From Geosiphon pyriformis uo1 (lineage: Eukaryota > Fungi > Glomeromycota): DNA of 64,000 bases. Shown here piece by piece: positions 2,858-36,800 of this stretch (its first letter is position 1; each line of letters opens with the position of its first letter). Both the position numbers and the translations under genes were made by a program. The DNA lies in NCBI GenBank assembly GCA_016748015.1, contig JAAOMT010000328.1:574955-638954 (forward strand), read 5' to 3'. Below the pieces are notes generated by a model. It did not search any database. It worked only from the letters and a program-made list of their open reading frames with translations, and was not told the DNA's origin.

Positions 2858-3055
2858 GATAAAATTGACTAATTATAAAAAGAAAGAATAAAGAAAATTA
2901 TTTTTAGATATGGGGTTTTTATTTGTTTTTGGGTTTTTGGGTGTTTTTTGTAATTATTTACTATTTTTTGTCTTTGTGTTTTTATTAAAAAATTATTGTA
3001 AAATTTAAGTGTTCAAGTTTGGTTATTGTTTTATTATAATTATTGGTTCTAAATT

Positions 3056-4390: not shown

Positions 4391-4457
4391 TGTTGTTGAT
4401 TTTTTTGTTTGTTCTGCTGTTAAATTTGTTGGTGTTTTGTTGGTGTTGATGTTGGTA

Positions 4458-6700: not shown

Positions 6701-6859
6701 TTCCTTGGCCATGGTTGTCAAAATATTTAAGTTGTAGAGGTGGTTGCTTTTCAAGAAGATAGATGAGAGTGGTTGGTAGTTCTTCTACTAATTCAGATAC
6801 TCCAAATTCGATTTCATTTTCATCATTCTCATCTGGCAGAGGAATGCTAAGAGCATAAC

Positions 6860-7480
6860 ATTCTAAACACCATTGTTTATCACAAGGCATAACACATTTT
6901 TCACACAATTGAATGTTCATTTGCTTTAATTATTGAATTTGAGCTTCTTTGGTCAGATATGTGTGGCTTGCAATTTGGTAGTAGGTTTCTACTTCATCTT
7001 TATAATCAAATTCAGCTAATTCTATGGTATACTCAATGTATTCAGCTTTTTTCATTTGGCAGACATTTTCTTGGGTGGCTCTATTGATTAATGTCATTGC
7101 TAGGTCAAAATCATTTCAGCATCATGAGGGTAGTGGTAAAGTTTATTGAGAGCACTGTTGTATGCTGCATCAAATGGTGTTCCTCTTCTGACTTTTTCCG
7201 AAATTAATAGAGCATATTAACAGGTCTGATCACATACTCCTCCTCTCATTACTACATCAATCCAATTGCATTCTTCTGATAGTCTTTCTCCACAAGTAAG
7301 GCAAGAAGTTTTGTTCCATTTTCCACTTCTCTTTGGGGATCCAAATTGTTCTCTATGGCATGTCTTACAGAAGTAACAAATGTGAGTTTCATATTCCTCT
7401 TCTGGGAAAATACAGGCTCCCATAGATGAAAGCTTCTTTTTGCAATCTTTGCATTTTAGTGAAATGTATGGTAGTTTTTT
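6860..7480 (-). pseudogene. Cys-rich putative Zn-binding region between protease and dUTPase
   Basis: CKDC..MGAC..CYFCKTC..CLTC..CDQTC ... LCEKCVMPCDKQWCLEC; equivalent Cys clusters occur in family A copies. Confidence 0.65.
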
Positions 7481-7648
7481 TCATGGTTCTGGTGTGGAAT
7501 ATCTAACTTTCTTTCATCCTCTTGATTTTTCAAAAATCTCTTGTTCTGTTTTCTCAGCCCAATTAGATGGTAATCTAAGAGCCATGTAGGTTTCAGTGAG
7601 TGGCATTTTCTTCTCTTCTTTAAATTCAAATACTGGAGCTTTTTCTGA

Positions 7649-8050
7649 TCATTTGTTAAAGGTACCACAGGTTGCAGGTACTATGGTATATTGTTCTTGG
7701 TATGAGATTTTAAGTTCTTGAGTTTCCCAGTTCAGGTTTGTATTGGCCTTGAGAAGCCAATCATTTCTAATTAGAGCTTGATATTGGGATGCATCTATAA
7801 CAAGAACTTTAACTGAAATGGTGATTTTATCAATTGTAAAGGGGAAATCATCAATTTCTCCTACTGAAGTCTTCTTTATATCATCAGCTGTGACAATAAC
7901 TGTTTGAGCTGGTCTGTCTATGTTTTGTTTGAGTTGTTGCATCAGCTGGTAAGTGATGATACTTCCAGCTGATCCACTATCTAAAATTAAGTAAATGGGT
8001 TTTCCTTCTACTGTAGCTTCTGTGTATATAGCAGTAATTGCTTTCTGTTC
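7649..8050 (-). pseudogene. Retropepsin aspartic protease of B1
   Basis: PIYLILDSGSAGSII at about 7955-8000, followed by QALIRNDWL (decayed IGNDWL). Confidence 0.92.
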
Positions 8051-8589
8051 ATTGACTGCTGTATTACTAAGCAGAAATGGTAATTCATTTGCTTCAAATT
8101 CAAATGGAAATATATCTGACAGATTGGCATTTTGGGCAATTTGAGCTGATAGAATGGTGTGGTTGGAAGGATTTGATCTTGGTGCTGCAATTTCATCTTC
8201 AGAAAGTGCAATTTGTTGAAAATCCGATTCCTCTGGTATTGTAAGATAACTGGGTTGAGTATGATAGTAATTAGGTCTTTGCTAACCAGAATTTTGGGGA
8301 ACCAACTGGTTATTTGGATTGATTCTGTTGTTGTTATTCTGCAATTGATTTTGGGGTGTGGATTGGTTATATTGAACCAATCTTCTTGCTGGTACTTGAT
8401 ATTGTTGAGTGAGTGGTGTCTGATATGGCTGAATTGATAAAGGTTGCTGATATTATTGCTGCATTGGTTGTAGAGCTGGTAAATAGTAACTGTTTTGATT
8501 TTGTGGTCTTAGTGAATAATAGGTTGGTGGTGGAGATTGGTAATAAGATTGTTGTGGTGAAGAGTAACATTGATTACTCCTGTTTTGTT

Positions 8590-10105
8590 GGTCTCTTTGT
8601 AATTTCCTACAATCTTGTTTCTAGTGTCCTGGAATTCCACAATAATGACAATTTTGAAGTTGGTTGTTGGATGGTAATCCAAAATTGTTTTGGTTGCGTC
8701 ATTGTGGAGGTTAATATCTTTGTGGTTGTTGTTGCTGTTGTTGTTGGTTTGTGAAGTAGCTTTCAACCTTTTTTGTGAGTTGGTCTATCTTCTCTTCAGC
8801 TGTTGAGCTGGTTTCTCTAATAGCCAAGTTAACAAGTTTGGTGTGGTTTGCTTCTTTCATAGCCATTTTATAATTCTTTGCATGTCTAATGGCAGTTGCT
8901 AAGTCTGCTAGAGCATGTGAGCAGACTTTCTTAATCAGTTTGTCTTTTAACCCTGCTATAAACTGATCCAGAATTTGAGTATCAGAATAATAATCATTGG
9001 TTTCCAATTGTCGGATTTGTTTGAGAAGTTTGTTGAATCTTTCAAGATAGGTCATAACAGTTTCAGATGTTTCTTGTTTGATATTGTGAAAGCAGTTTCT
9101 GAGAGTGATAGAAGTATTGTTGTTGGTAAATTGTTGTAGAAAAGCATCTTTGAATGCTTGCCAGTTTTTAAATGGTTTTTCTAAGTTTTCAAACCATTCT
9201 CCTGCAGTTTTTTGGAGAAAGTATAGAATTGCTTTGAGCATTCTTGCTGCATTCCAACCATTTGCATCTCCTGCTTTTTGAACTTTGTCAAGCCATTCTT
9301 GAGGACTGGTATCATTATCTTTACCAGTAAATTCTGGAATCTTTGCAATATAAGCAGTTGCCATTTCCTCTTTGTTTTCTGTGGCTTCTTCTTGTTCTGA
9401 TTCAGTTTCTTCACTTTTCAAATTTTTTGAATGATCACTTTCGTTTTCCTGCAAGTATTCAATAATATTGGTGCTTGTTGATATGGGTTCCTGCTGTTGA
9501 GTAGGATTTTTAGGTGACTGAAAATCTTCTGGTCTGGAGAAATAGTTAAGTGGTGAATTTGATGTTTGTGGTTGAGCAAGCAAAATTGGAAATGGTGTAA
9601 TAGAAAGTGGTAATTTGATACTGGTTCTTTGTTCAGGTGTTTGCAAGTGTTTGGCAGTTATATTTGATAGTATTGGAGTGTTTGGAGTGGTTTTTGCGTG
9701 TTGTTTCACTTTTTGTTTGCCTTTGTTGCTTGTTTTTGTTTCTGATTCAAAGTCAAAAGAGTATTTAGACTGTACTGGGTATTTTTCTTCACAATACTTG
9801 ATAATGTTGTAATTGAGTTCTTAAAAGTAGGTGGCAAGTGTTTCACTGTTAAGGTCTTCAGTTCCCAATCATGAATAGTGCACTAGATTATTGTAGAAGT
9901 TGCTTCTCACTTCTGAAATGTTGTAGTTTCCAAACAAATAATTGTTGATACAGTTTTCAATGTATTGGTAGAGTGTTCTTTCAACAATTTCAATTCCGTC
10001 TAAGATGTTGAATCTCTGTTTGCAATGGGTGTAAATTGACTAATAATACTCTAGAGTTGTTGTATCTGGTGTGGTCACCACTTTAAAGTTTGTTGTTTGC
10101 TGTGT
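8590..10105 (-). pseudogene. Gag of B1 (retrotransposon gag capsid plus CCHC knuckle)
   Basis: ORF 8711-9709 has IPEFTG..EWL..AGEWF..IKQ..YLERF..FIAGL; CHYCGIPGH*KQDC at about 8610-8650. Confidence 0.9.
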
Positions 10106-10108
10106 TAT

Positions 10109-10126
10109 TTCCATGGGAGAGCACCA
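10109..10126 (-). promoter_or_regulatory. Primer-binding site of B1 (TGGTGCTCTCCCATGGAA)
   Basis: Starts TGG 2 nt after the 5' LTR; complementary to a tRNA ending ...GAGCACCA (tRNA identity not determined). Confidence 0.85.
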
Positions 10127-10128
10127 AA

Positions 10129-11139
10129 TGTTACCAGAGGTTTTTGGTCTCTTTTCTTAAATATTAGTAATGTTGATTTGCTGTGAATTTACATTTCCAG
10201 GAAGTAGTTGGACCTCCAATAACTGAATTTATCTTCAAATTATCTCCTATAATTTGAACTGTTAGGCTTATGAGTGGAATGGCCAATTCCATACCAGTTA
10301 CTTTGTATAGTTACGTTGTAGTAAATGTCAACTCTTTCCCAGAAATTGCTTGTCTGGAAGCTCACTAAAATGTGTAGTTACTTTGCTGTAAAAGTCAACT
10401 CTTCTACAGGAATTTTATCTGTAGGCTACCCTAATAATTGTAAGAAGAAAATAAAAGAAAAATAAAAGAAATGTAAAAGAAATAGAATTTTGTCAAGAGA
10501 AATGTTTTCTATCCAGGCCTGAAGTCACTAACAGTTTATCGAAATTGGTAGCTAATCAATTTCAAAACGTTAGTTGGGTTTTGGGGATTTTTCCAAGTGC
10601 AATAATTAAAGAATTTGGTTTTTCAAATTATTTGATATTTATTTTTTTTTGTGTGTGTAGAAATAGTTTTAAGTGATAAATCTAAAGTAAAATACATTTT
10701 CTTGAAGAGAAAAGCTCTTTTTTTATATAACTTGTTGTAGTATTAATCTATAAACTTGCACTTTTTCTCTTTGCTCAAATTTCGGTGAACTAAGAATACA
10801 TTTTAATGGACTACAAGTTATTTCGCTAAACTATTAATTAATTTGGGTGAACTATTCATAATTTCGGCAAATTTCTATAAATTTCGGCAAATTTCTTATA
10901 AATTTCAGTAAATTTCTGTAAATTTTGGCAAACTTTTGAATGTTACAAAGTTCAGAGTATTGTGTAATTTGATCATTTTATTTTTTGTTATACTAATTGG
11001 ATTATTTAATTGAATCATGATATGTGATAATTGATTAAATAATAAATGATAATTTGAAATGATATTAATATACTAATTAATTATAGGAATTATAAGGGTA
11101 ATTTCATGCTAATTAATAGCTAAAATTTTACTGGTAACA
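10129..11139 (-). repeat. 5' LTR of B1
   Basis: Perfect 9-bp terminal inverted repeat TGTTACCAG/CTGGTAACA; adjacent PBS. Confidence 0.97.
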
Positions 11140-14100
11140 ATAGCTATCCAGATGTGCCAAAGCATAATTTTATGTGGCATTAAAAAATATTCCATAACTA
11201 ATCCAGTCACTAATAAGAATCGTGTATTGGCATGAGGTGTCACACATTTTTTCTTGACCAGGAATGTTGTTCTATATTTTTTTGTTAAGTAATTGTTCTC
11301 TACAAGCAAAACATGGTTTGTTGTCTCACTTGTCTTGTTATTTGGAATATTCATAGTGTTTTTTGTGACATAGTTTGTAGTAATAATAGATGTATGTCCA
11401 ATAGTCTTTGTCAGATGTGATTCATGTTTCCATAGAAGAAAGTTTCTTGTCACAATCTTGGTATTTAAGTGGGATGTATGGTGGTTGCTTCAGTGGCTCA
11501 TGTATATAAAATTTTTTCCAGTTACTAATTATTTCTTTTGTGGTGGTGTTTTTTTCTGGTGTATTCTCTTCTTTTTCTTTCCTTTTGTTGTTCCAAAAAA
11601 GTACCAGTAGTAACTTGTTGTGTTTGGTATTGGCTCAGAAAACTTGGTAGGCTTCTTAGATAGGTTTTTTTTCATCATCATTGAACTCAATAAGTAGTGC
11701 TGTAGTGTGGATGGTCTTGAAATAACCACATATGGCTGGTATATATGTGTTGTCTATTCTGGCTAAGTTGCAATTTTTGAGTAGTCCAATTAAGCACAGT
11801 GTTGGTTTTAAACAACCAATTATTGCCAATGAGTGCTTAGTATTGGGTTGCTTCTATTACCAAGACTTTGATAAATATAATGATGCCATTAACTTCAAAG
11901 AAGAAGTCATTAATTTCATCAATAGGAGTTTTAGTCATTCTATTAACTGTAATGATTTTGGCACTGGCAGCTTGATCAACTCAGCAACCTAATTGGTCCA
12001 TGAGTTGTTACATAATGATGCTGCCTGTTGAACCACTGTTTAAGATCAGTTTAATTGGCTGACCATTAATTTTGACATCAGTATACATCACAGTGATGGA
12101 TTTTACATTAAGTGTGGCTCCATTAAAGAATGGTGTTTCTACTTGGTTTTTTAATTTGAATAAGAAAATGACTGTTAAAGAGTTATTATTGATAATAGCA
12201 GTATGTTGTTGATAAATGGCTGTTTTTGATTGGGTTCTGGTTTGTTGGGTGTGGTGTCTTCTGGGGTAACCAAAAGACTTAAATAGTTTTGGGAATTCAG
12301 GTTTTGAGAGTACCCAGTTTCCAAACTCCACTGGCATGATCTTAATTGTTAATTGGAAGAACTGAAGATTAGTTAATAGATTATTATTGCCAATCTCCAG
12401 TTTTGTTGGGTTATTCTTAGCCTTTGGTTTCCAAGTAACATTGGAGCTGGATTTTGAAACAGTATTTGAATCAGTTGGGACTAATAGATTACTTGTGACT
12501 GTGATGGTTGATAAATTATTAGAATAGTTGGCTGATAAATTAAAGGTACATATATTGGCTGCTGTATTATTTGAGTGTAATTAGATGGATATTGATCTTA
12601 ATTTAGGTGATAGTTTGGAGTTTAAAATTTGCAATTGGGGGTTTTTGTATTGATTTTCTGATCATGAATTATTATAAAATCAGCAGTCGGCTCTTAGATA
12701 ACCTTGTTTACCACAGTTGTGGCAGATACATGTTTCTTGCTGCTATGGCTGATTATATGAAGAGGATGAACATAACTGATTTTGGAAATAATTTGCATTT
12801 CTCTGATTATTTTGTTGTTGTGAAGGTTAATAAATGGCTTGATTATTAGTTAAGTATCCCTCTAATTTCTGATTAATTGAGTCACTGAATTGCTTTAGCT
12901 TGAAATTCAAGTTAGATAATCTGTTTATTACTAAATTTACAGCTTGAATGTGGTTGGCTTTTAATTTAGCTGATTCTAAATCTCTAATATAGTTAATAAC
13001 GTCCTGAAAAGTAGCTGGACATAGTAGGCATATGTATTGTAGTAGGCTGCTGTACAACCCACAAATAAACTGATTCAAAATCTGGAGTACTGTAAAGTAG
13101 TTTGTGTTAATGGCTTGAATTTGATGCAGATTTTGGTGAAAGTGTCTCAAGTAAGTTGTGACTGCTTCAGTGTTTTTTTGCTTAATAGTAGTAAAATTAG
13201 TTGCTAAACAATTAATACTGTTATAATTGCTGAAATATTGCTAAAATATGACTTTGAATGTATTGAAATCTTAGAGTTTGTTTACAAAATTTTGGTACCA
13301 AGAATTGGCAGTATTTTGTAAAAAGTATAAGATGGCTTGTATTGCTCTAGCATCATCCCAGTTGTTGGCAGTTATTGCTTTGGCTATGTCATTAAGCCAA
13401 ACTTGGATATTATCTTCTTTGCCAGTAAATTTTTCTAACTTAACAATTGATACATAGGCCATTAGTACAATTAGTGGTTGTTGGAGTGGCTATTAAAGTG
13501 GTTGTTAAAGTGGTTGTTGTTGAGATGGTGTTTGTGGCTGTTGAATTGGTTTGACAATTAGTTTAATTGGTGGCTGATTGATTATAATTATTGGAGGTAA
13601 GTGTTGTTGATTAATTATGTCGGAGTTGGGATTGTTCTGATTTTCCTGAATTTGAATATTTAGGATTTGATTTTCTGAGTTTTCTGTAACTGGATTTTGT
13701 TTATTAATTTCTTGATCACTGCCTTCTTTTTCTTTAAAGTCAGTTATTTTCCAGAAGCTGGTGGTTCTGAAATCTGGTTGTAGTGGTTGTGATTAAATTT
13801 TTGATGGTATTGGGGATTGCAATTTAAATCCCTCAAAATAATTGCTGTATGTTCTTAATAACTCTGTTTTCTTTTGTTTACTTTGAAATGGAATTCTGTT
13901 CAATAGTATTGTTGCACTTGCTGTAGTCATGCTTATTATATTAATAGTACTTCCAAGTGTGTAATAATATAATAAATTAGCAAGTAAATCAAATTTTTGT
14001 TTCTTCCAAGTGGGTAGTTGGATTTGCTATTGTGTTCCTGCTGATGTTTGTAATCTTCTTTTTTTTTGTTGGCAAAAGTAATAAAAAATCTCTGCTTGGT

Positions 14101-19964: not shown

Positions 19965-20630
19965 TATTATAGTTGAAATTCATAGTTTTTATTAGTTATT
20001 ACATGTATTAGCTATTGATGTTATATAATTAACTATTCTATTTTTAGATAGTAATTATTAACTTAATTAATAACTTGACTGTTGACTTAATCATTGACTT
20101 GATCATTGATCTAATTATTGACTATTTTAATAACTGTAGAAAGTATTAATATAACAAATAATCAAAAATAAATAAAATAACAACTATCATATTAATTTTT
20201 CTTATATTGCTTATTTTTCTTTCCTTATCTTCAAGTATCTAAATATTTTGGAATAAAAAATTATTTGTTGGCATTTACTTACCCTTTTTCTGACTTGTAT
20301 AATTATAATATTTGAAGATTATTAAATAAAATATGACTAAAAAGTATATCTAATACTTGATATTAAATTCTAAAAGTGCTGATGTGAAACATAGAATTAT
20401 ATTAATATGTTATTATTTGTTGACAGTATAGACTATTTTTTTATCTTTAAATTTCCTGGTTATTCTTTGAAAAAAATAGTTATTGAGATATTTTATAAGA
20501 CTAATCTTACATATTGAATTCATACTTATTTAATTTGCTCTTTAAAGTTGAATTTCTTTTAATTAATTTTATTATTCTATAATTTTGTTCTTTTTTATTA
20601 TCTATTAACTTGTTATTCCAACTTGTAACA
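19965..20630 (+). repeat. 3' LTR of the family C element (666 bp)
   Basis: Follows the PPT and ends CTTGTAACA; contains 12-bp TTGACTTAATCA-like repeats. Confidence 0.88.
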
Positions 20631-23010
20631 ATATCATAAAATACTACTTTTAACAAATTTATAATATTAATACATATTATATTATTATTATTTAATAATT
20701 TATTTTATTTTATTATTGTTTGTAGTTTTGAATTGAAAATTTACATGTAATTTATATGACTAATAATTAATCTTTACATAAAATCAACTAATTTTAATAT
20801 AATAATCTTAATTATATTAAATATTATTTTAGCTTTTATTAACTAATTTTTAAAAATAAATTCTTTATATAAAAACAAATATAAACTAATATTAAAAAAA
20901 CTTAAGATCAATAACTAAAGTATTACCAAAAATATTAGACTAATATTAATTAAAAACTTTTAAAAAAAAACTACTTGTTTAATAACTCTTAAAAAATAAA
21001 TAAATCTAAATTATAAACAAAAACATAATTTAAAAACTTTATTTTTTTATATTATATATACATATACTTAAATATTTACTATTATATAATTACTTTTTAA
21101 TAGCAATTAAATATTTTTTATATGGAGTTTTTATTAAATATATATGCAAATTAATAGTAATTTTGTTTATAAAACTAACAATTACATAAAAGTTAAAATG
21201 CCAAACCAAACCAAAGCAATAAAATATTAATTAATATTACCAATGAATAAAAAATTTATAATCTTAAAATCTGAATTAGTTTTTTACAAAAAACATTTAA
21301 TTATATTATTTATCAATTTAATAAAACAATATATATTGTTAAAATTATTTAATTAATTACTATTAAAAAAATTTTCTCAATATTTACTTAAAAAATAAGT
21401 TTTAAAAACATAATTAAGTTTGTTAATATATTAATTTGTTTATTGTTTAAGACATCAAAATAATCTTTAATTTTTATTTATTTAACAAAAATATTTTTAA
21501 ATTTAATTAAGTTTCTAATATAATAGTACTTAATTCAATAATTATTATAAAAATTAAGACTTTTTAACAATAATTCAATATTATATATATTTAAAAATAC
21601 TTGGCTATTAGAAAAAAATATAATATTAAATAATATTAGAACATACTTAAGCATTAAAACAATAGTTTGTATTTTAACTAAAGTTAAAAACAACAAACTA
21701 TAAACTTTAATATCAATTTTTAAACCAATTTCAGATTAATAATCTGTAATATTATTAATAGTACCAAAAAAACCAAAATTTATAATAAATTTATTTATAA
21801 AAATTAAGATATTAGACAAAAAAACAATTTACAAACCAAAATAAGTAAATACAAAAACACTTGTATTTAATATATTTATTTAAAAAGTTTTTTAAAAGAA
21901 AACAAAAAGTTTTTGACTAAATTTCTATTTATAACAAAATAAAAAAATTAGACTTTTTAAATTTATGTGCTTTTAATAACAAAAAATTTTTCAATTAAAA
22001 TACAATTCATAATTATTCAATAGTTAATCAGCAAAAATAATGCCAAAATGTTTAAGAAACTTAAAAATCTTAAAATATTTTGTGAATTTAATATATCTAA
22101 GACAGAAATATTATATTCGAAATAAAAAGCATTAAAAACACTAACAGCCAGAAAAACTTTATTGTTTAAAAATATTTTTATTATATTGTTAGAAAATTGT
22201 TTATAAAATCGATTTTTAATCTGATTAAAAAACAGAAAATATTTCAAAAAATCTAGTATATTATTTGTAAATCTAATAATTTGTGTTTAAAAAATTTGCC
22301 AAAAATATTTTTAATATTAATAAAACAAATTATTAAAGTTATTTTACTCTTAGCTTAAACTTAATCAAATGGTTTTAAATTATATAATAATATATAATAT
22401 ATAGTATTATAATTCTAAAATTATAAATTTAAGTATTTTTTTTGAATATTAATAATTTTAGTTTGTAATATAAGTACTATGTATTATAACTGTTTTAACT
22501 ACAGTATAAATATAGTTGTATGAATTTATTTTACAATATATAGAAAGAAAAAAAACAAAAGTTATAAATAATAATTATAAAATAAAAAAATAAAAAATAA
22601 TTATTGTTGTTTTTGAACAAAGGCACAAAAAATAACATAAATTATCAGAAAACAATTAAATTATTCTATTAAAATCAAACCAAAATTTTTATAATTAATT
22701 ATTAAAAAGATGTGATGTTTAAATATTTAATTTAAAAAATAAAAATAAAAATAAAACATTAAAAAATCATAAAAATAATAATACCAATAGAAATAGTATT
22801 GCTTAAATATTTAGTTAACATATTTTAATATAGAATTTTCAGATAACATTTTTATTTTTATTTAACAAAATTATGATAAAAATAATTCTTTTAAAAAGTA
22901 GTATAAAATAATATAATTAGAGCTAATTGCTTGTAACAAAATAAAAATATATATAATAATATAAAGAAGATATAAAACAGAGAAAAAAATAATAAAAAAA
23001 AAAAAAAAAA
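20631..23010. other. Extremely AT-rich, heavily decayed block of unknown origin ending in a poly(A) run
   Basis: No recognisable motif; long A run ends at 23010 and abuts family B sequence. Confidence 0.4.
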
Positions 23011-24208
23011 CTTATTATTTATAATAAACTATATTTTTCTTTAGATAATATGCAAGCTTTCATAAATAAAAACTTTTTGTTGCAATTTTTGTATCTAAGT
23101 AGGATATATAGTGATTGTTTCTTCAGTTCTGGTTTTCAATATAATATATATCAATTATTAACTGGTTTAATTATAGAAATAAATTATTAGCTGGTTTTTT
23201 TAAACTATAATAATATTGGCTGTAATGTTTTAAATAATTGTTTTGTTTTTTCAGCTCAATTGGATATTAATTTAAAAGCTATGTAAATCTCAGTAATTGG
23301 TTTCTCTTTTTTTTTTGAATTTAAACATTAGAGCTTTTTAGATTGTTTATTAAAACTACTATATATAAAAAGTACTTAGGTATATTGTTTTTAATATAAG
23401 ATTTTAAGTTTTTAGATTTTTCAATTTAAATTTAAATTGGCTTTAAAGAGCCAATTGTTTTTTACTTAGGTTTAGTATTAAAGTATATTTATAACTAGAA
23501 CTTTTACTAAAATAATAATTTTATTGATTGTAAAAAAAAAATCATCAATTTTTTTTATTGAAGTTTTTTTTATACTATTGGCTATAACAATAACTGTCTG
23601 GATTGGTCTGTTTATATTTTGTTTGAGTTGTTGTATTAATTGATATGTAATAATATTTCAGGCAAATTTACTGTTTAAAAATAAGTAAATTGGTTTTTTT
23701 TTACTTCTGTTTTAGTATATATAGCAGTAATTGCTTTTTGTTTTATAATAGCTGCATTGTTAAACAAGAATGGTAATTTATTTGCTTTGAATTCGAATAG
23801 AAATATATCTAAAAGATTGGTGTTTTTGGCTATTTTGGCTGATAGAATAATATAATTGTTGCTAAAAAAATTTTGTCTTGGTACTGTAGCTTTATTTTTA
23901 AAAAATATAATTTGATAAAAATCCTGTTCTTCAGACATTGTTAAATAGCTAAGTTGGATATAAAAATAATTAGGTCTTTATTGAACTGTATTGTGGAAAA
24001 CTAATTAATTGTTAAGATTAACTTTGTTATTATTTAAAAATTGATTTTGTGGTGTAATTTGGTTTTATTAAACCAATTTTTAAGTAAATATTTAATATTG
24101 TTGGGTAGATAATAATTAATATTGTTGAATCTGTAGTAGTTGTTGATATTATTGTTGTATTGGTTATGAAACAGATTGATAATAATTGTTTTAAGATTTT
24201 AATAAGTA
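23011..24208 (-). mobile_element. Family B remnant B2 (protease to gag C-terminus), left part
   Basis: Colinear with B1 about 7380-8490; ORF 23675-23938. Confidence 0.85.
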
Positions 24209-24450
24209 CAATTAGAAAGATTTTAAATTTTGTAGATCAATTCTAGAATAATTCACAAAAAATTCTTGTAATCTAATTAATGTTCAGCATTATTAGTATA
24301 GAAAATTTGATAATACTTTATTAATCAAATACTTCAAATAAAAATTAAAACTAACAATAGAAACATACTTTTATAAACACAAAGTTTCAAAATCTATAAA
24401 GATCTACACAACTTTACATAGTAATTTTTTATTAAATTGGATTTAAAATT

Positions 24451-27400
24451 ATGTCTTGCTTTATAATAAATGCCAAAAACTTACTCTGTTTATTTGAATC
24501 TCTTATTAGTGAATATGACAAAAGTTAATTAACAAAATGTAAGACCAAAGAAAATCAAAGATAATAACATACATCAGCTAGTGTTACAGCAAAAAGAATA
24601 ACAGAAATAATTAAGTATTTTCCTAGATTAACTATATTACTTAACTCTCTAAACAATTACTTTTTATGTGAAAGACATTATAATCAGATTGTTGTTAAAA
24701 AGTCTTTTATTAAACGAATTACTAAATCAAATAATTCAACTTTTTTAGATTTAGAAAAAACAGAAAGAAAAAAACCAAGACTTTTTAATAATAACAAGTT
24801 ATTAGAATTAGAAAAAACTTTTTCTGATTTTGGAATCCAAGTATTCTTGCCAGATCTAATATATGAAATTTATATAAAATAGATACAGAAGCTAAAAGAT
24901 ATCAATCAGCAATTATTATCTAAGAATACAACATTAAAAAAACAATTAAGTGAAGTATTTAATAATCAACAAGATCATATTAAATTTATAATAAAAATTA
25001 CCAAAAAAAAATAAAATAATTTGTATAATGATATAATAAGTTTGAAAAAAAATCATGAATGCTTTAGTCTAGATAGTTTTTTAGAATATTGTTCTTTAAT
25101 ATAACTTGTAAAACAAAATCCAGTTATTGTAAAATTTATTGAAACTTTTACTTATAATAAAAATAAATATCAAAATAAAGAGGAAAAGCTTTTTAAGTGT
25201 GCTGTAGCAGTTGATGTTATATATGGATTAAGACACTTAAAATATGTTTCTGCTATTAATTTAGCTACTTTAACAATCAAATATTTAGTAGCAAGATCAA
25301 AAATAATTATTGATATTGATAATCATATTATAAATTCCAGTTGTTATAAAAAGTTTACTAACTGGTTAGAAAGTTTGGCTATAGAACAATCAAAGCTTTC
25401 CAAAGGATTTTTATTTTTAGTCTTTGACAATAAACAAAAAGATCAAAAAAATTACTTAGATTGTAAATATAATACAATCATATTCAATATTATTATGAGT
25501 TTTGTTGTTTTAATTATAATTAAATTAATAATATTCAAAATATAGATTCTTGGTTGTATTTTGAACTTCCTGAAAAGAAATATGAGAAATTATTTTCTTT
25601 AACTTAAGGTATGATAAATAAAATTCATAAAAAACTTATTAATTATCTTATTATTATTTTAGAAGAGCTTTGTATAGAGAAAAGTCAAGAAACAAATGTG
25701 ATTGATAAATTAATACAACATCAAAGCCAAATTGGTTTTTTAAAAAAATGTCCAGCTTGTCAATTGTCTAACATTAATAATAAAAAGCAAGTTTGTTCTG
25801 TATACTATAACAAATTACTAACAATCACTAAAATGAATCAATTAAATAAATCAGTTGACATTACCAAAAACCTATTCCTTATTCTTACACATTTGAAAAT
25901 GCACAATTGTATTCAAAAATTAAGGTTTATATGCTGTAATTATATGTTCTTAATCCAATAGCCATAAACTCAAACTCAATTGCCAATATTCAAAAAAATT
26001 TTGAGTATATTAAAGAACTATTTAGCATTAAAGATGGTAGCTACTGTTATCAGTAGAATTCTAGCCATTAATTAGCATGAAATTATTTTCATAATTAATA
26101 TTATTAATTAGCATATACTATTATCATTTCAATTATTACTTATTATTTAAACAAATTATCAAATATTATTATTCAATTAATAATTCAATTTGTACCATAG
26201 AAATTAAGATGATTAAATTACACAATATCCTGAACCATTTAATATAATCAAAATTCGCCGAAATTGATGAAAATTCGCCGAAATAATCAATAGTTTGTAA
26301 AAATAACTTGTAGTTTACTAAAATGTATCTTTAATTTGCCAAAATTAGAGCAAAGAGAAAAGTGCAAGTTCAAAGACTAGTATTACAATAAATTGTATAA
26401 AAAAAGAGCTTTTCTCTTCAAAAAAATGTATCTTTTCATAGTATCTTATTATAGTATCTTACTTTAGATATCTTAATTAGAACAAATCATCTTTTACACA
26501 TCTCAAATAAAAATTAAATATTCGAAAAACCAAATTCTTTAATTATTATACTTGAAATTCTTTCAATACAACTAACATTTTGAAATTGATTAGCTACCAA
26601 TTTCAGTAATCTGTTAGTAATTCCAGGCTTGAATAGAAAACATTTCTCTTGACACAATTCTATTTCTTTTACATTTCTTTTATTTTCTTTTACTTTTTAT
26701 TATAATCATTAGGGTAGTCTACAGATGAAATTTCTGTAGAAAAGTTGACTTTTACAGCAAAGTAACTACACATTTTTAGTGAACTTCCAGACAAGCAATT
26801 TCTGAAAAAGAGTTGATATTTACTACAATGTAACTACACAAAACAACTGGCACAGAATTGGTCATTCTACTTATAAGCCTAACAGTTCAAATTATAAAAA
26901 ATAATTTAAAGATAAATTCAGTTATTAAAGGTTTAACTGCTTCCAGAAAACGTGAAATTAGCAACAAACAGACATTAACAAAATTCAAGAAAAGAGACTG
27001 AAAACCTTCAGTAATACTGCAGATAAGTTATAATAATATGTGATGAAATATCTTATCATCATGCACAAACAATTAAAAAAGACTTTTTTTAGCTTATATT
27101 AGTTCTGGGCACTCTTTATAAAGAAATAAATATGCAAAAAGCATTTGTTAAACTGAATTAAAATATTAATATAAAATACTTTGCACAATGTTAGAAATAT
27201 TAAAATGAAAGTCAATTACAGTTTTTTAAAAAATGTCCTAATTATTATAAGTTATGAGATTCAATATGTAATATATATAGACATGCAATGGCTTTTGAAT
27301 TAATGTGACCATATATTGTTTCTAAGAAAAATCCACCTGTTAAAAATTACTTAGAATGGGCCCAAAATGAAACAGATCTTATATTTAGGTTAAAGTATAA

Positions 27401-28240
27401 ACAAGTCTTTTTTTATTTACAAGCAATTATTAACTTTCACACTAAAGTTTGTTTCAATAAGTTTTTATTAAGACTTATGACTAGACAAATGTTTGTACCA
27501 ATTTGGTTTGCTCAGTGCTATCCTATTTACTAATTAATTGAAATTGTTGATAAAAAACAATAGCTATGATTGAAGTCTAAAGTTTGCAAGCTGATTCAAA
27601 AAAGAATTGTAATTTCTTGATCTAAACTTTCAAATAAACATTAAGACCATAATGCAATACTTAAAAAAATTAACAAAATGCTCAAATTGTTAATTTTTTC
27701 TACATCTTCACAATGGCATTGGAAAATTGCAGTGTATAACTGTATCAAATTTGAGAAATTGCATACTAACTTCTTTAATGTTATCAGATATTCTAAAAGT
27801 GAAATATACAGATCTCATACACATTCTAGCTTTATTGTTGAATCAAATTAATTTCAAGTTTAGATAAGAAAGACACAATTGTAAATTCAAATGTCTCTAA
27901 TTGTGTTTTTTGTAATATTGGCCATGAATAAATATTAAGCAAAGAAATAAAAAAATTCAGTAAAATTGCACAAATAAAAAAAATAGACTTTTTTAAAGCA
28001 AGACAAATTAAAAAAATATTATTAAGTACTTGAAAACCAATTTCAGTAACAAATAAAAAAGCAAATCATCAAAAAATGTAAATCTGTTAATAAAATCACA
28101 ACTATTATCTATTATTAACTCTCTAATACCTCTTTTAAATAATCATATTTTTGAAGCTTATCAAGTTAATTATGTAATAATCTAATAAATATCCTTCAAA
28201 AAGTTAAAAATATATTGTATTGTGTACAGTTTTGTTTATG
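24451..28240 (+). pseudogene. Putative DDE transposase, DUF6589/Academ-like; split by the solo LTR at 26045-27016
   Basis: Manual translation: N-terminal C..C..LCERHYN; VFDNKQ..KNYLD; CPAC..VC; after removing the LTR, R.V..CDEISYHH, LGTLYKEIN (decayed PGxLHEEMN), YYKLWD (HHKxWD), NAILKKINK (DxxxEExNK). The 3' end is approximate. Confidence 0.7.
26045..27016 (+). repeat. Family B solo LTR (972 bp) inside the transposase
   Basis: Homologous to B1 LTRs; TSD CTAC/CTGC. Confidence 0.93.
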
Positions 28241-28254
28241 TTGAATTGAATGTA

Positions 28255-30420
28255 TTATTATTTATAATTATAACTGTGATCAGTTAATACACAATGCTTG
28301 TATTTTTGAAGATGTTAACTATAAATTCAATGTTTATAATACAATTGTTTCTATGGTGGATGATAATTTTAATATATGCAGCCTGAAAGTTACATGGAAT
28401 ATAAATTGCAGTTATTGTGGCACTATTACCAGTAAAATTTTAGCTATTAATTAGTATGAAATTATTCTTATAATTCCTATTATTAATTATTATATATTAT
28501 TATTATTTCGATTATCACTTATTATTTAATCAAATTATCAAATAACATTACTCAATTAATAATCTGATTTGTACCATAGAAATTAAGATGATCAAATTAC
28601 ACAATACTCTGAACCATTTAACATAGTCAAAATTTGCCGAAATTAATAAAAATTGGCCGAAATGATCAATAGTTCAGTGAAATAACTTGTAGTTTGCCAA
28701 AATGTATTTTTAGTTCATCCAAATTGTAGCAAAGAGAAAAATGCAAGTTCAAAGAGTAGTACTACAACAAGTTGTATAAAAAAAGAGCTTCTCTTTTTAA
28801 GAAAATGTACCTTCTCATAGTATTTTATCATAGTATCTTACTTTAGATATCTTAATTGAAACAAATTATCTTTTATACATCTCAAATAAAAATTAAATAT
28901 TTGAAAACCAAATCCTTTGATTATTACACTTGAAATTTTCTCAACACAAACTAACATTTTGAAATTAATTAGCTACCAATTCAGTAATCTGTTAGTAACT
29001 CCAGGCCTGGATAGAAAATGTTATCCTTGTTAGAATTCTATTTCTTTTACATTTTTTTTATTTTTTTTTATTTTTTTATCATAATTATTAGAGTAGCTTA
29101 CAGACAAGATTCTTGTAGAAGAGTTGACTTTTACAGCAAAGTAACTACACATTTTTAGTGAGCTTTCAGATGAGCAATTTCTGAGAAAGAGTTGACGTTT
29201 ACTACAATATAATTACATAAAGTAACTGGCAAAAAATTGGTCATTCCACTTATAAGCCCAGCAGTTCAAATTATAGGAGATAATTTGAAGATAAATTCAG
29301 TTATTGAAGGTTTAATTGCTTCCAGAAAACGTGAAATTAGCAACAGACAAACATTAACAACATTCAAGAAAAGAGACCAAAAACCTCCAATAACAGCACT
29401 AATGCTCATACTTGGCAAAATTCTTGCTCAGAGCTGCAATATAAAGATTATAAGTTAGATCTTCTTGCTAATACATGTTTTGTAAGATTCTAAACTTTAT
29501 TCAGTTCTATTATTTGAATATATGGTTAAAATATTTACCTGTTGCTAAAGAGAAGACTATTGGATAGGTTCCATAGAGCTTTGGTAACTACTATTGCCAA
29601 TTGTTTAATAGTAATAATTTTTAATATATGGCTTTTTGCCACTTCTTCTTATTAACTCCTATTTGCAACATTTTTCACAAGCTAAAGAATTCAGATTACA
29701 TACAAAAATTTTATTGGCCATCAAGATTGGACTTAGTGCCAATGCTGCCATTGTATTATATATACTCATTTTTAAAACATAATATGTTGAGTCTAGATCT
29801 AAATCTCCATTCTATGTGATTATGTTTGAATTATAAAAAGCATTCAACACAGATTTATTTGCTCCAAAAAAGTTGATTTTTAATACATTTTTAAAACTAT
29901 TAGTCAAATTTTTGCTTACTAATACTAAATATTGGTCAAATAATAAATATAATTGCTAATATAAAGCTCTTTTTTAATTACAGATGCCAAAGTTGATGTA
30001 AAACCATATTTATTGGGTATATATTGAAATCTTTATGCTTTGAGTTTTATTATTGATCATATTTTTTTTCCTAAGGAAAGATAAATTCGAACTCCATTCT
30101 CAGTTGATTTGTTTAAGCAATGTCCTATTAACAAACTTGTTTCCAAGAAATCTCATTGGACCATTATTTTCACTTGTAGATCTTCCAATATAGAAAAAAA
30201 ATAATCTTGTTAGCCAAAGTTTAATCCAGAATAACTTTATTGATACCTACAGCAACAGTCTCCAAAGTACTATCAGTCTTTGAAGCATTACTAGTCTTTA
30301 AAGCACCAAGAATAGCAGTACTATACTATATGTTAACTATTATTAAAACTCTTATAATATTCACAAATAACAAGTCAAATATAATAGTTTTGTTATTGTT
30401 TTTTGATGGCAGTGGCAGCT
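28255..30420 (-). pseudogene. Second, convergently oriented gene of the TIR element; function unknown; one probable intron; split by the solo LTR at 28424-29395
   Basis: One frame from about 30420 to 29540 is broken only by point stops (…IWFYINFGICN*KRALY*QLYLLFDQY…ACEKCCK*ELIRRSGKKPY…). CAG|GTAAAT donor near 29540 and TAG acceptor near 29507; the frame continues across the LTR. Ends are approximate. Confidence 0.55.
28424..29395 (+). repeat. Family B solo LTR (972 bp) inside the second gene
   Basis: Perfect TSD GCAC (28420-28423 / 29396-29399). Confidence 0.95.
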
Positions 30421-30565
30421 TATAAAAAAGAATAATAATTGAATGTTGTAATATTTTAGAAATTTTGTTTAGTGTTTTAGAATCATTTCTAAAAACTTCT
30501 CTAATTTTTTTTACTATTATAAAAAAAATGATTTCTATTAACAAATTGAAAAATCTCTCTAATTG

Positions 30566-30903
30566 AAGTAGTAAGTAAGTAATAATAGTTAATAATATGA
30601 CTGTTAAAATTGAAAATAATATTAATTATTTTTTTGTTACTAGTCTTATTGCATTTTTTAGCAGTTTTATTTCCAATATTTTAGAATCTTACAATAGTAA
30701 CAGCTTTGAGATTGGTTGTTTATTAATGGTAAAAGATTGCTTTGGTTTTATTGTTATAATAATTGATATCTTTGTTGTTGCTATTGTTGATTTGTAAAAT
30801 AGTTTTTAACTTTCTTTATAAGTTGGTCAATTTTTTCTTTAATCATTAAACTGATTTCTTTAATAACTAAGTTAATAAGCTTTATATAATTGGTTTTTTA
30901 TGG
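30566..30903 (-). mobile_element. Family B remnant B2, right part (gag C-terminus)
   Basis: Colinear with B1 about 8500-8865. Confidence 0.82.
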
Positions 30904-33395
30904 TATTATTAGAAATTTTTGGTTTTTTTTTTGAATGTTGTTAATGTTAGTTTGCTGTTAATTCACATTTATTGGAAGCTAGTAAATTTTTAATAACTGA
31001 ATTTATCTTTAAATTATTTTTTATAATTTAAACTGCAAAGCTTATAAGTAAAATAACCAATTCTATACTAGTTACTTTATGTAATTATTTTGTAGTAAAA
31101 GTTAACTCTTTTTTAAGAATTGCTCATCTAAAAACTTACTAAAAAATGTGTAATTACTTTGCTATGAAAGTCAACGTTTTTACAGAATTCTTGTCTATAG
31201 ATTATCTTAATAATTATAATAATAAAAAAATAAAAAAATAAAAGCAATATAAAAAATTAAAATTTTATTAAGAGAATTATTTTTTATTTAGGCCTGGAGT
31301 CACTAATTAATTTCAAAATATTAATTAGGTTTTAGAAATTTTAAATGCAAATAAAAAAAATTGGGTTTTTAAAGTATTTAATATTTTTATTTTTTTTGTT
31401 ATGTAACCAATAATTAATTCTAATTAAAATAATTCTAAATAAAATGTTTCTAAGATAAAATAATTTTAAGGAAAGATATATTTTCTTATTATAATACTAG
31501 TCTATGAACTTGAACTTTTTTTGCTATAATTTTAACAAACTAAAAATATATTTTAACAAACTACAAGTTATTTTGTCAATTATTTCAGTGAATTATTTAT
31601 TATTTTGGCAAATTTTTAAATGTTACATAATTTGAAATATTGTGTAATTTGATTATCTTAATTTCTATTGTACTTATTAGGTTATTAATTAGATAATGAT
31701 ATTTATTAATTTTGATTAAAATAATAAGTGATAATTAATATAATGATAATAAATGCTAATTAATAATAAGAATTATAAAATAATTTTATGTTAATTAATA
31801 ATTAAAATTTTATTAGTAACATAATCTTTTCTTTAAGACTAAGTTCTATTAAAATCTAAATATTATCTGTAATATCAAAATAATAATCCAAAATGATTAA
31901 AGTAATTTGATCTAAAAATTGTTGAAATTTCAATTTTGTGAGTTTGCCAATGTATTAAATCTTTATTGGTTGGAGTATTGGATTTTGTAGAACATTTTTA
32001 TAAGTATTAAATAAATTATAAAGTTTAAAAGCTGCTTTAAGTTTGTAACAAATGTTTGTTGATCCATTTGCTATTTTAAAATCATTGTAAATGTGTTTTT
32101 ATATAACTTTAAAAGTGAGATTGATTGCTTCAAATTCCAGTTTTTGTTCATAAAGTGTTTTTTTAATATGAAAATATTTAAAAATAAGAGTATATTTATG
32201 GCTTTGTTTATTAAGATACAGTTAAAGCTTTTGTTGAGTTGTGGTATTTGGTAAAATATTAATAAGGATAAATAAAAGATTTTTTTTAAAGCTTGATTTA
32301 AAAGTTTTGACAATTGAATTTCAGAAAAACTTCTTATATTTCTTTTATAAGAGTAATAATTCTGAAATTTATTTACTACTAACATTATAGTTTCTTTTTA
32401 AGTATAATTAATTTGATTTTTATTGATTACTATAAATAAATTGGAGTATGTTTTCAAAGCTAATATTAATTTTTAAGACATTTGTTAAATGTTTCGGGAA
32501 ATAATCATGATAAAAGTAAATAAATTAAGAATAAAATTTGGAAAAATTTGAAAAGAAAAATAAAAAATTATTTTTGGATATAGGGTTTTTATATATTTTT
32601 GGTTTTAGATTTTTTTTGTAATTATTTACTATTTTTGTTTTTATATTTGTGTATTATTAAAAAAATATTATGATAATAGTAAATTAAATATTTAGGTTTG
32701 GTTGTTGTTCTATTATAACTATTGATTCTAAATTTTGGAGAATATTTTTGAGATTAATTAAAAAGAAATATGTACTAATTTGTGGAATTAATAGTTCAGA
32801 ATTGTTTTTGGAATAATAATACTTCAATTAATCTTCATGTACAACTTTTGCTAAAACTTTGTTATCAAGTTTTAATTTATATGATTTATTGTCTAAGATT
32901 TTATAAATATAAAATAGTCTATCTTATTTATGTTTAAATTTTCTATTCTATTGTTTTTTCATCTTAATTTTGTATAAGAGAACTTTGTTTCCAATTTTAA
33001 ATTTGTTGGTAACTGGTAATAATTTGTTGTTATGTTATTCTTTTTGTTAAGCTTAAAAGTGTTTAATATAGGTGGCTGTTATTTATTATTTTTTTTTTAA
33101 AGTATTGAAAAAAATATAAGCTTTTTATTAATGTGTTTCTTGTAAGTTTTCTTTATTGATTGGTTACATGAAATATGTTTTTATAATAAAATTAATTGGT
33201 AACATTGCTATTTTTTTATAGATTAAGTTGAAAAGTATATGTTTTATGGTGTTTTGTTTTAGTGTTTTATATATTAGTAATATTAATAAAATAAAGATAT
33301 TTTATTCTTATTTAAAATCTGTTAAAACTTTGGCTAATAATTTACATAGTGTTTAGTTGATTATTTTACAAGTCCATTTGTCTATAAGTAATATG
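30904..33395 (-). mobile_element. Family B copy B3: 3' LTR (30904-31821), PPT, ORF3, integrase C-terminus; truncated by the hAT element
   Basis: Colinear with B1 1184-3715. Confidence 0.92.
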
Positions 33396-33820
33396 TAAAG
33401 TTTTAATGTTTAATTTGGTTTAATTCAAGTTTAATTAAACTATTAAATCAAATTAAACCAAACTCAAACAAAAAATTGGCAAAATTTTGAACCTAAACTT
33501 GAATTAGACATAAAATTACTAAACTTAAACTGAATCTGAACATATGTAATAAGTTTGGTTTAAGTTCAGTTTAAAATTTATAAACATGTTTAGATTTGAC
33601 TATTAAAAATATTATATTATATTATATTATTATTTAATTTTTTTTTCAATGGTCTCTGTATCTATAATTGAAACTACTATGCTATTTTTATAGTTTTAGG
33701 CACTAAACAAGACTTTATATTTGTAGTCATATTTTCATTTGCAGAAAAGACATATTTAGAAACAACAAATGATTTTTAAATTACAAAATAATTATAAACT
33801 ATATATGTAAGATAAGAAAA
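33396..33820 (-). mobile_element. hAT DNA transposon 3' end (dimerisation domain plus subterminal repeats)
   Basis: Minus-strand 33660-33820 reads FSYLTYIVYNYFVI*KSFVVSKYVFSANENMTT..L.PKTI, a C>T/G>A-decayed FPxLAxMARDYLAI..SSVxSERVFSxG. Decayed GAACC/GGTTC subterminal repeats at 33400-33575. Confidence 0.75.
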
Positions 33821-36800
33821 TTGTTGCTAAAGCAATCACAGCAAATAACTGGGATGATGTCAGAGCATTTTAAGCAATCTTATATTTTTTTTAAAATACT
33901 GCTAATTTATGGTATTAGAATCTTGTCAACAAACCACTAAACTTTAATGTGTTTAAAACCACATTTCTACAGTATTTTAGTGATAATAATAGTATTAACT
34001 GTCTAGCCAATAGTTTTACTACAATCAAACAAGATAATACCAAAACAGTCACTATTTACTTAGGATGCTTCCACAAAAATCTGTGCTAAATACAAGTTAT
34101 TGAAGCTGACTATTTTACAGTGCCACAGATTCTGAATCAGTTTATCTGTGAGTTGTGCAGTAGTTTGCTATAGAGAGTACATTTAATGCATCCAAATACA
34201 CTCCAAGACACAGTTACACATACATGAGATTTTGAATCAGCAAAGTTAGAAGCCAACCATATTCAAGCTGTAAATCTAATAATGAATGGATCATCTGAAT
34301 TGAATTCCAAATTGAAACAATTCAGTGATTTAATCAACCAGAAATTGGAAGAATACTTAGCTAACAATCAGACCATTTATCAATCTCTACAATAATACAA
34401 TAATTAAGGAAACTCAAATTGTTTCCAAAATTAATCATATTTTTTATCATCAATTAATCAACTGTAACAGCCAAAAATGCATATTTGCCACAATTGTGGT
34501 AAACAAAAACATATTAAAATTGACTGCCACACTAGAATTAATAATTAATGATCAGGAAATTAATATCAAAACTCTGATCACTAATTTCAAACTCCAAATT
34601 ATCACTTAAATCAAGATCTGTATCAACCACATTATACTTCAATGATGCAATAAGCAATATACTTGTCATTAATTTATTAGCCTCTAGCACTAGTAATATA
34701 TCAACCACAGCCACAGATCATATATCAACCCCAATTATTCCAAATACCACCACAAAACTCAGCTTAAATATCTGAAAATCAAAGACCAAGAGTGACCCAA
34801 AACTGGAGATTAGCAATAGTTGTTTATTAGCCAATCCCAAACTCCTCAAACCAACTATTAAGATTATGTTAGTGGAGTTCAGGAACTGGGTACACCCAAA
34901 ACCTAAATTCTCAGAACTATTTAAGTCTTTTGGTTAACTCAAAAGACACATTACTCAACAAACTCAAGTCCAACCAAAAGCAGTCATTTATCAACAACAT
35001 TCTACCAGCAACTATTACCAACAATGACTCATTAGAAGCCATTTTTTTCTTTGAACTTGAAGAACCAGCAACAACACCCTTCTTTAGTGGAGCTGTTCTT
35101 AACACCAAACCAATTATGGCCATGTATACTAATGCAAAAGTTAATAGCCACCCTATTAAACTAATTTTTGATATTGGTTTAGCAGACAGCATTATTACCA
35201 AGCAACTTATGAACCAATTAGGTTACCAAATTGATTGTGCTATCAGCACCAAAATAATAACAGCTAATAAAACAACAAAAACTCCAATTGGTGAAATCAA
35301 CAACTTCTCTTTTGAAGTCAATAGTATTATTATGCCTATCAACATATTGGTAATAGAAGCCACCCAGTATTAAGCTCTTGTTGGTAATAACTGGCTGTTC
35401 AAAACCAATGCAGTGCTCAATTAAAACACCCAAGAGCTACAACTCAGCCAAAATGGCCAACACATTTGAGTACCAGCTACTTGCAGACACTTCAAAACCA
35501 CCACACCAGTACTATTAATAGAATTTAAGAAAAAAAAGAAAAAACCTATCTGGAAAGCCTACCATGTTTTGTGGACTGAAATTGACTGCCACCAATACTC
35601 TTGTGAAATGACAAAAAAAAAGGAAAGGAAAAAAATAAGCCACAGAAAGACACTATTAACAGTGAAACCACTAGTAATTGGAAAAAAACATACTCAACTA
35701 ACATTAGACCAAAACCTTTTTTTATTCCACTTAAGTATAAGAATTGCAAAAAAAAGCTCTTCTTCATAGGAGCTTGAGTTATATTTAACAAAAACTACTG
35801 AACACACACTCATTATTACTGCAAGCCATGCCACAAAAAATGCTATGGTTATTCCAAATGACAAGACAAGTGAGACAATAAACCATGTCTTACTTGTAAA
35901 GAACAATTATTTGACAAAAAAATATGGAACAACATTTTTGATTGAAGAAGAACATGTGATGCCTTGTGTCAGTACATAATCCTTATAAATAATTGGGTCA
36001 GCAGAAAAATGTCTTTTAATGCCATGTAAAACCATGCTTTATTATACTTAAACAGTTACTTACATGATAAGGATAAGATCTGAAGAATGACAAGTGCTAA
36101 AGTTGAAGGTACTTTGCCCAAAAAAATATTAGAAATTAAAAATAATCCACCTAAACCAGCCAAAACTTTCCTTATTCTTAATTCAGATGTTTTTGTTAAT
36201 ATCAAAACTGGTTCTAAAGAATTCTATGAGCATTACCAAAATTTAGCACCAACCAGAGTAGAACAAGAACAGTGGTTAAAATAGTTAAATGCTTAACTTT
36301 GTCAACACTGTTTAATATCATGTGACTTTCAATATTGTGATAATTGTAACCTTATTTACAATCTATTACCATGTATGATATACATAATTCTTAAAGAGAA
36401 AGAACCAATCAGCAGCTGTGCCTTAGAATTAGAATTAAAGTTCAATTCTGATTCAAACTCTAACAATAATAACAAAAACAATGGTTTTAGCTCAGTTCAA
36501 AATGGCAACACTAATAACAACAATTCAGACTCTAATTTAAACTCAGAATTATATATTGCACTTTTTGATTTTTCCAAAAAGCAAGAACTAAAATGGTTCA
36601 GCAATAATAATAAAAATATTATGCCAAAACATGTGTATAATACTAATATTAGATTTGATCTGAGATATCCAAAAAAAAATGCCATCAAATTGAAACTATA
36701 TTTGCATACTTATATTGATCTGAAAATAGCACTGAAAATTTTAATAACAACTATGATTCAACTAGCATCAAAAAGTAGTTTAGCAAAAAAAGGAATTAAT

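Follow-up and report, generated by a model that had tools for sequence, protein, structure and literature searches.

What kind of element occupies positions 24209-30565 of the stretch examined here, and what does it say about the proteins known as DUF6589? The stretch, referred to below as the window and numbered from its first letter, comprises 64,000 nucleotides of the glomeromycotan fungus Geosiphon pyriformis uo1 (assembly GCA_016748015.1, contig JAAOMT010000328.1, positions 574,955 to 638,954 of the forward strand). A preliminary description, made from the letters alone, had presented the element as a two-gene transposon with terminal inverted repeats (TIRs), a 5-bp target site duplication (TSD) and a transposase of the DUF6589/Academ type. 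DUF6589 is a widespread eukaryotic family without an assigned function, and a preprint lists it among the possible virulence or epigenetic factors of rust fungi (bioRxiv 10.1101/2025.10.24.684071). Here, the family is placed in the context of mobile elements: we consider it very probable that the element at 24209-30565 belongs to a family of autonomous cut-and-paste DNA transposons of G. pyriformis with a single gene, and that this particular copy is dead.

The limits of the element are set by the following features:

24204-24208, no strand: left TSD copy AAGTA, identical to the 5-mer at 30566-30570
24209-24223, plus strand: left TIR, here CAATTAGAAAGATTT, family consensus CAGTCAGGGAGATTT
30551-30565, minus strand: right TIR, here AAATCTCTCTAATTG, family consensus AAATCTCCCTGACTG
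30566-30570, no strand: right TSD copy AAGTA

The left end reads CAATTAGAAAGATTTT from 24209 and the right end finishes ...AAAATCTCTCTAATTG at 30565, the reverse complement of the right side being CAATTAGAGAGATTTT. In the transition-corrected consensus of the family, in which C or G was restored wherever at least a quarter of the copies keep C/G, the termini are CAGTCAGGGAGATTT and AAATCTCCCTGACTG; they match perfectly over 15 bp, with scattered matches to about 25 bp, and are common to all family copies examined. The end positions given in the preliminary description, which spoke of TIRs of 16-25 bp starting CAATTAGA, are therefore right, while CAATTAGA itself is the form that CAGTCAGGGAGATTT takes after C>T / G>A decay and the perfect repeat of the consensus measures 15 bp. 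The copy of the TIR motif that had been seen in a subterminal position (30490-30505) did not hold: the terminal TCTCCCTGACTG and the subterminal CTTCTCTAATTT of the consensus are unlike, and their resemblance in the window was made by decay.

The behaviour of the other copies bears directly on the limits, since copies without these TIRs, or with a duplication of another length, had been named beforehand as what would speak against the element. When this was checked, the termini were found to be conserved and the TSD to be 5 bp long in 11 of the 13 copies with both ends: it is perfect in ten (AAGTA, TATTA in three copies, TAATA in four, AAATT and TAGTT), differs by one transition in one, and is discordant in two. 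In addition, in two paralogues of the host sequence, C637 and C777 (given by coordinates only), the flanks of the window element are directly adjacent, with an overlap of exactly 5 bp. These are thus empty sites, which demonstrate that an insertion took place and how long its duplication is, and they bear out the exact AAGTA duplication reported on the two sides. TIRs, a TSD length that is constant across copies and empty sites, that is, the features of a TIR transposon, are all found. As a side observation, four copies (L037-L040) share an identical flank, TACATGTTCAATTAAATATG, past the right terminus; these copies were multiplied along with their surroundings, being nested in another repeat or in a segmental duplication.

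The element is interrupted by two solo long terminal repeats (LTRs), which had been recognized before and whose exact limits could be established:

26045-27016, plus strand: solo LTR 1 of a Ty3/Gypsy element, TSD CTAC (26041-26044) / CTGC (27017-27020)
28424-29395, plus strand: solo LTR 2 of the same Gypsy family, TSD GCAC (28420-28423) / GCAC (29396-29399)

Both are 972 bp long and 85-86% alike, each has a 4-bp TSD, and they start with TGTTA/TATTA and finish with TAATA/TAACA. When both were excised, 4405 bp remained, in agreement with the earlier estimate of about 4.4 kb, and this sequence is colinear from end to end with copies that have no interruption and measure 4394-4434 bp.

The excised element carries one gene that could be verified, a plus-strand pseudogene which solo LTR 1 splits 8 codons upstream of the second catalytic aspartate (D2):

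24466-26040, plus strand: transposase pseudogene part 1, with the N-terminal coiled coil, the codon of the first catalytic aspartate (D1, motif FDN) at 25426-25428 and a CxxC...CxxC zinc ribbon from 25749
27017-28220, plus strand: transposase pseudogene part 2, with the D2 codon at 27042-27044, a decayed PG.LH..MN motif, the codon of the catalytic glutamate (E) and the C-terminal tail

In the window copy, the D2 motif reads CDE where the consensus has CDG, and the catalytic E codon (27663-27665) is now AAA. The corrected consensus has a plus-strand frame of 840 codons, followed by one leftover stop and a frameshift, beyond which the frame continues in register with Gigaspora C-termini to about consensus 3000-3070 (window positions around 28180-28220); the C-terminal tail, extending to about 28180-28220, aligns with those of two Gigaspora proteins introduced below, P0002 and the product of the L062 ORF. 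The original transposase would have been about 930 aa long. The motif series FDN, CDG.PY, PG.LH..MN and D...E..N, which had been read from the decayed sequence, proved to be real and conserved.

A homology profile of this protein (alignment A4, a tiling of natural open reading frame (ORF) pieces that was checked by eye) recovered 356 homologues among 1.84 billion representatives. The closest full-length homologue is Gigaspora rosea RIB08136.1 (P0002, 1015 aa), which is 52% identical to the consensus, and dozens more come from Gigaspora, Diversispora and Scutellospora. Relatives at 25-28% identity over about 700 residues are found in oysters, mussels, clams and sea urchins, and shorter matches in a chytrid and a rotosphaerid. 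Intact homologues match Pfam family PF20231 (DUF6589), whose threshold of 27 bits is passed by P0175 (37.6), P0105 (33.4), P0235 (32.9), P0233 (32.6) and P0098 (32.3), so that the assignment proposed from the motifs held up. The matches are colinear, but partial and weak (21-38 bits): glomeromycotan proteins match PF20231 positions 39-165, the region of CDG and PG.LH..MN, and animal proteins positions 301-407, the region of D...E..N. In other words, the matches take in the D2 region and the C-terminal E region, but neither D1 nor the zinc ribbon. The nearest clusters in the ESM Atlas, searched by language model and by fold, are likewise DUF6589. Judged by these similarities, the putative Geosiphon transposase is a divergent member of DUF6589, and what the Pfam entry leaves without a function appears here as a protein encoded between TIRs and flanked by TSDs.

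The fold of the protein was approached through an AlphaFold (AF2) model that covers residues 225-900 of P0002 and draws on an alignment of 43 homologues (mean predicted local distance difference test score, pLDDT, 83.7; predicted template modelling score, pTM, 0.80). The model shows a split RNase H fold, with D1 (FDNEQ) on the first strand, the CxxC...CxxC zinc ribbon before the strand that carries D2 (CDG.PY), and a helical domain of about 180 residues between D2 and the helix with D..LEE.NK. The residues of these motifs, D144, D381, D584 and E588 among them, are nearly invariant in the 43 sequences. Hence, both characteristics of DDE transposases are found, an RNase H fold and a conserved D on beta1, D on beta4 and E on the helix after it, and the catalytic triad would correspond, in consensus numbering, to D331 (FDNEQ), D545 (CDG.PY) and E752 (D..LEE.NK). 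The best solved match in structural comparisons was the transposase of the Drosophila P element (PDB 6P5A; Z 11.6, 340 residues, root-mean-square deviation 5.8), followed by the hAT transposase Hermes (PDB 8EDG; Z 9.2), Tn5 (Z 8.9), the retroviral integrase cores (Z about 8) and RAG1 (Z 6.3); the alignments with the integrase, Tn5, P and Hermes cores span model residues 135-625. In a Foldseek search of the PDB there was no match at E <= 0.001, and Transib ranked 21st.

Evidence that such proteins belong to mobile elements also came from Gigaspora rosea. One element (L062, positions 4735-8627 of QKWP01001766.1) is 3.9 kb long, with the TIR CAGTCGGGGATTTT, a perfect TSD, CACTA, and one uninterrupted ORF of 974 codons. 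Its left subterminal sequence is recognisably the same as that of the Geosiphon family, and it is 78% identical in DNA to consensus 603-2962, the similarity stopping at the transposase stop. Eight members of its cluster are at least 90% identical, and, from its apparently intact sequence, the element is a candidate active transposon. A second element of G. rosea (L061, 7125-11620) is 4.5 kb long, with a 26-nt TIR, CAGTCCGGGAAATTTCC, and the TSD TATTG. Only 530-700 bp follow the stop codon in these two elements, which are therefore single-gene elements. Relatives of DUF6589 are thus found between conserved TIRs with constant 5-bp TSDs in two distantly related fungi of the mycorrhiza type, and these ends and duplications, repeated across the Geosiphon copies and again in Gigaspora, indicate that proteins of the DUF6589 type are transposases. 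The structural evidence of mobility that the preliminary description had seen in a single locus is in this way borne out, and it yields a rule of ends and TSD for annotating DUF6589-type elements, as well as a candidate active element in Gigaspora.

Outside these two fungi the elements are less complete. For the Diversispora element (L063), only the left end was recovered, and ends and TSDs were not definable for the relatives from animals and an unknown eukaryote (L064-L068), among which L064 and L065 are two 98%-identical copies of 7.2 kb with no TIRs at their homology limits. It was also observed that the 78% nucleotide identity between L062 and the Geosiphon consensus extends over 2.4 kb and joins two distant glomeromycotan lineages; this likeness could reflect horizontal transfer or unusually slow evolution. 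A further observation concerns the molluscs, in which three family members carry the RAG1 importin-binding or N-terminal domain PF12560 (RAG1_imp_bd), namely P0238 (Mytilus edulis, residues 47-130), P0078 (44-185) and P0237, with 33, 25 and 22 bits, respectively. An element of Aplysia, N-RAG-TP, has been described by Panchin and Moroz, in the form in which their work is cited in PMC8355894. The mollusc members may be elements of the N-RAG-TP type, which are thought to have donated the N-terminus of RAG1. The Geosiphon and Gigaspora proteins differ from them in this respect, since PF12560 was sought in the glomeromycotan N-termini and was not found.

Within Geosiphon, the family comprises at least 40 copies. 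Genome matches at 82-90% identity numbered 42 for the left 1.8 kb (40 of the 50 candidates being scored) and 134 candidates for the right 1.2 kb. Besides full copies of 4394-4434 bp, there is a 3.9-kb derivative without consensus 3086-3606, which is the commonest form and takes in the two least diverged copies. All of them are heavily decayed. The transposase frame contains 12-27 stops per copy (23 in the window copy), and 97% of these stops derive from CAA, CAG, CGA, CGG or TGG. Differences between copies are transitions rather than transversions by about 40 to 1, with 24-34% of cytosines hit in CpA, CpC and CpT and 56% in CpG. This C>T/G>A pattern looks like repeat hypermutation of a repeat-induced point mutation (RIP)-like or deaminase type. 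TGG has become TGA at 20% of the Trp codons (transposase frame of 19 copies; L041-L059, window), and such transition-only decay can imitate a deviant genetic code, that is, code 4. The GC content over window positions 20000-34000 is 14-25%. In the public annotation of Geosiphon, decayed pieces of the transposon appear as some 30 separate 'hypothetical proteins' (P0001, P0239-P0267).

All these observations can be integrated in a simple model. The original element would have been about 4.4 kb long, with CAGTCAGGGAGATTT as perfect 15-bp TIRs and a single gene on the plus strand. This gene would have encoded the transposase of about 930 aa, in which an N-terminal coiled coil is combined with a catalytic domain of RNase H fold that has the zinc ribbon inserted between D1 and D2 and an all-helical domain between D2 and E. 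This protein would bind the CAG...CTG ends, excise the element and integrate it with a staggered cut of 5 bp, preferably into AT-rich targets of the TAATA/TATTA type; the cut-and-paste mechanism and the 5-bp stagger are deduced from the fold, the conservation and the TSDs. The window copy would have inserted into the internal region of a Gypsy element and later have received two insertions of a Gypsy, both of which were reduced to solo LTRs. Like all others, it was inactivated by massive C>T/G>A transition mutation.

Several points weigh against this model. Not one Geosiphon copy is intact, and the transposase frame is supported by the consensus and by homologues. Neither the decayed ORF pieces of the window nor those of other copies match Pfam, and many homologues fall below the PF20231 threshold, among them P0185, the closest intact relative of the L062 type (24.9 bits against 27); a scan of the window's genome for PF20231 gave no match, but it was equally blank on control genomes. 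The triad was assigned from conservation and predicted structure, and the element as a whole is known from sequence and prediction, transposition being deduced from both. A last point resides in the 3' region, where the preliminary description had placed the second of two tail-to-tail genes, and which comprises the following:

28221-28419, no strand: start of the 3' region, Geosiphon-specific, without similarity to the Gigaspora sister elements
29548-29955, minus strand: what is left of orphan antisense ORF 2, which has 136 aa in the corrected consensus and is cut short in the 3.9-kb form
30060-30538, minus strand: what is left of orphan antisense ORF 1, which has about 160-180 aa in the corrected consensus; 28 nt separate its first ATG from the terminus

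In the consensus, these antisense ORFs measure 172 and 136 aa and lie on the same strand. Hardly any of 1000 dinucleotide shuffles gave ORFs of such length, the maxima being 179 aa for the longest ORF and 115 aa for the second longest; some coding origin of the region is thus conceivable. The Geosiphon annotation, moreover, calls many copies of ORF1 as hypothetical proteins. It could be supposed from this that ORF1 and ORF2 code for an accessory protein which the Geosiphon family requires or carries along, but a two-gene element of this sort is decidedly unlikely. The 1.4-kb 3' region is missing from both Gigaspora sister elements. Protein searches, covering lengths of about 0.55-1.75 times the query, found homologues of ORF1 only in Geosiphon, where they are other copies, and none of ORF2 among 5.8 billion proteins. 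Neither ORF has a match in Pfam, their language-model recognition score is below that of real proteins, and the AF2 model of ORF1 has a pLDDT of 40 and no confident fold. The first ATG of ORF1 is so close to the terminus that there is no room for a promoter, and the commonest form of the element, including the youngest copies, has a truncated ORF2, since it lacks consensus 3086-3606. Nor is a convergent partner a feature of the lineage, as had been suggested: L061 and L062 encode one gene, and the antisense ORFs have no homologue outside Geosiphon. Most likely, the 1.4-kb 3' region with its antisense ORFs is an addition specific to Geosiphon and not a functional second gene.

If the element is a single-gene transposon, as we prefer, its place among the known superfamilies has to be decided. 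Academ elements are eukaryotic DDE transposons with TIRs and a large transposase, with a similar range in fungi and invertebrates, as here; they occur in cnidarians, molluscs, echinoderms and fungi, a range shared by the DUF6589-type proteins, and DUF6589 was added to Pfam after 2017. In 2017, Academ had no Pfam family; it is most abundant in Pucciniomycotina (PMC5751038), where DUF6589 is enriched too (bioRxiv 10.1101/2025.10.24.684071), and it has been annotated in the genomes of arbuscular mycorrhizal fungi (PMC11952901). DUF6589 and Academ may be the same protein family, and it is quite possible, if somewhat short of probable, that the Geosiphon elements form a third, undescribed Academ lineage with DUF6589 as the transposase core, no XPG or helicase and a 5-bp TSD, a proposal that competes for the name of the family and not for its mechanism. 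The published lineages are AcademX, with an XPG nuclease and TSDs of 3-4 bp, and AcademH, with a helicase and TSDs of 9-10 bp (PMC10045372), exactly as the preliminary description had given them. The single-gene Geosiphon family matches neither and is set apart from both by the described TSDs and partner genes: the TSD is 5 bp in 11 of the 13 Geosiphon copies and in the two Gigaspora elements, and no XPG or helicase Pfam domain was found in 19 full-length homologues or in the adjoining genes. Of the grounds on which it had been said to fit neither lineage, these two stand and the convergent partner gene falls. The nearest folds are those of P and hAT. The P element (Z 11.6 over 340 residues) and Hermes (Z 9.2) gave the best structural matches, in both, as here, a large helical insertion separates the second D from the E of an RNase H-fold DDE core, and many hAT elements have termini starting with CAG, like the Geosiphon family. 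Nevertheless, it is highly improbable that the P or hAT superfamily proper includes the Geosiphon family as a divergent branch. The identity in the structural alignments with the P element and Hermes is 8-9%, the TSD is 5 bp as against 7-8 bp in the P superfamily and 8 bp in hAT, the C/D..H of hAT and P is replaced by a G..H motif, and a zinc ribbon is placed between D1 and D2. There is no Pfam match to Tnp_P_element, THAP or the hAT dimerisation domain (PF05699), and THAP, GTP-binding and hAT dimerisation domains are all absent; the only trace of hAT is a faint PF14372 match at a non-homologous N-terminal position, plus a precomputed one in P0176. As for Transib and ProtoRAG, the 5-bp TSD is the same and the mollusc members carry PF12560, but a relationship is hardly credible and has already been largely refuted: the termini read CAGTC and not a CAC heptamer, there is no match to the RAG1 core (PF12940), RAG1 scores Z 6.3 against 11.6 for the P element, Transib comes 21st in Foldseek, and PF12560 is missing from the glomeromycotan proteins. 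The features that define membership in Transib, P or hAT are thus absent from the family, P and hAT being its nearest folds.

A broader proposal would be that the DUF6589-type transposases constitute a superfamily-level lineage of their own, separate from both AcademX and AcademH and present in Glomeromycotina, chytrids and many invertebrates. Its elements would have CAG...CTG ends, make 5-bp TSDs and encode a P/hAT-like core into which a zinc ribbon is inserted, and the mollusc members with a RAG1-N-terminal-like domain would be the N-RAG-TP elements. Taken in its entirety, this is rather unlikely. If it were true, the donor of the RAG1 N-terminus would have been a transposon that makes 5-bp TSDs.

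The surroundings of the element are made of Gypsy sequences. The two solo LTRs are of the same LTR family as those of a fuller Ty3/Gypsy copy (window positions 1186-11143), whose gag (8711-9709), dUTPase (6324-6920) and integrase (3056-4099) are all on the minus strand. The same copy serves as a reference for the host sequence on the two sides of the element:

23238-24208, no strand: host, decayed Ty3/Gypsy internal region, homologous to 7541-8502 of the copy at 1186-11143
30566-30905, no strand: continuation of the host Gypsy internal region; here 30691-30882 corresponds by homology to 8639-8839 of the reference copy, reaching the 3' end of gag

It had been stated that a Gypsy gag host resumes beyond the element. 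The resumption is real, but the insertion site is not in gag proper: judged by the reference copy, the gag ORF ends about 200 bp upstream of it. This host internal region is present in about a thousand copies in the genome. A further LTR of the same Gypsy family (30926-31821, minus strand), with which a new Gypsy copy starts, begins about 20 bp past the host fragment, and this immediate succession marks the locus as a stack of nested Gypsy insertions. Finally, the dUTPase domain of the reference copy (PF00692, E 1.8e-18; window positions 6324-6920, minus strand) is located within its pol region.

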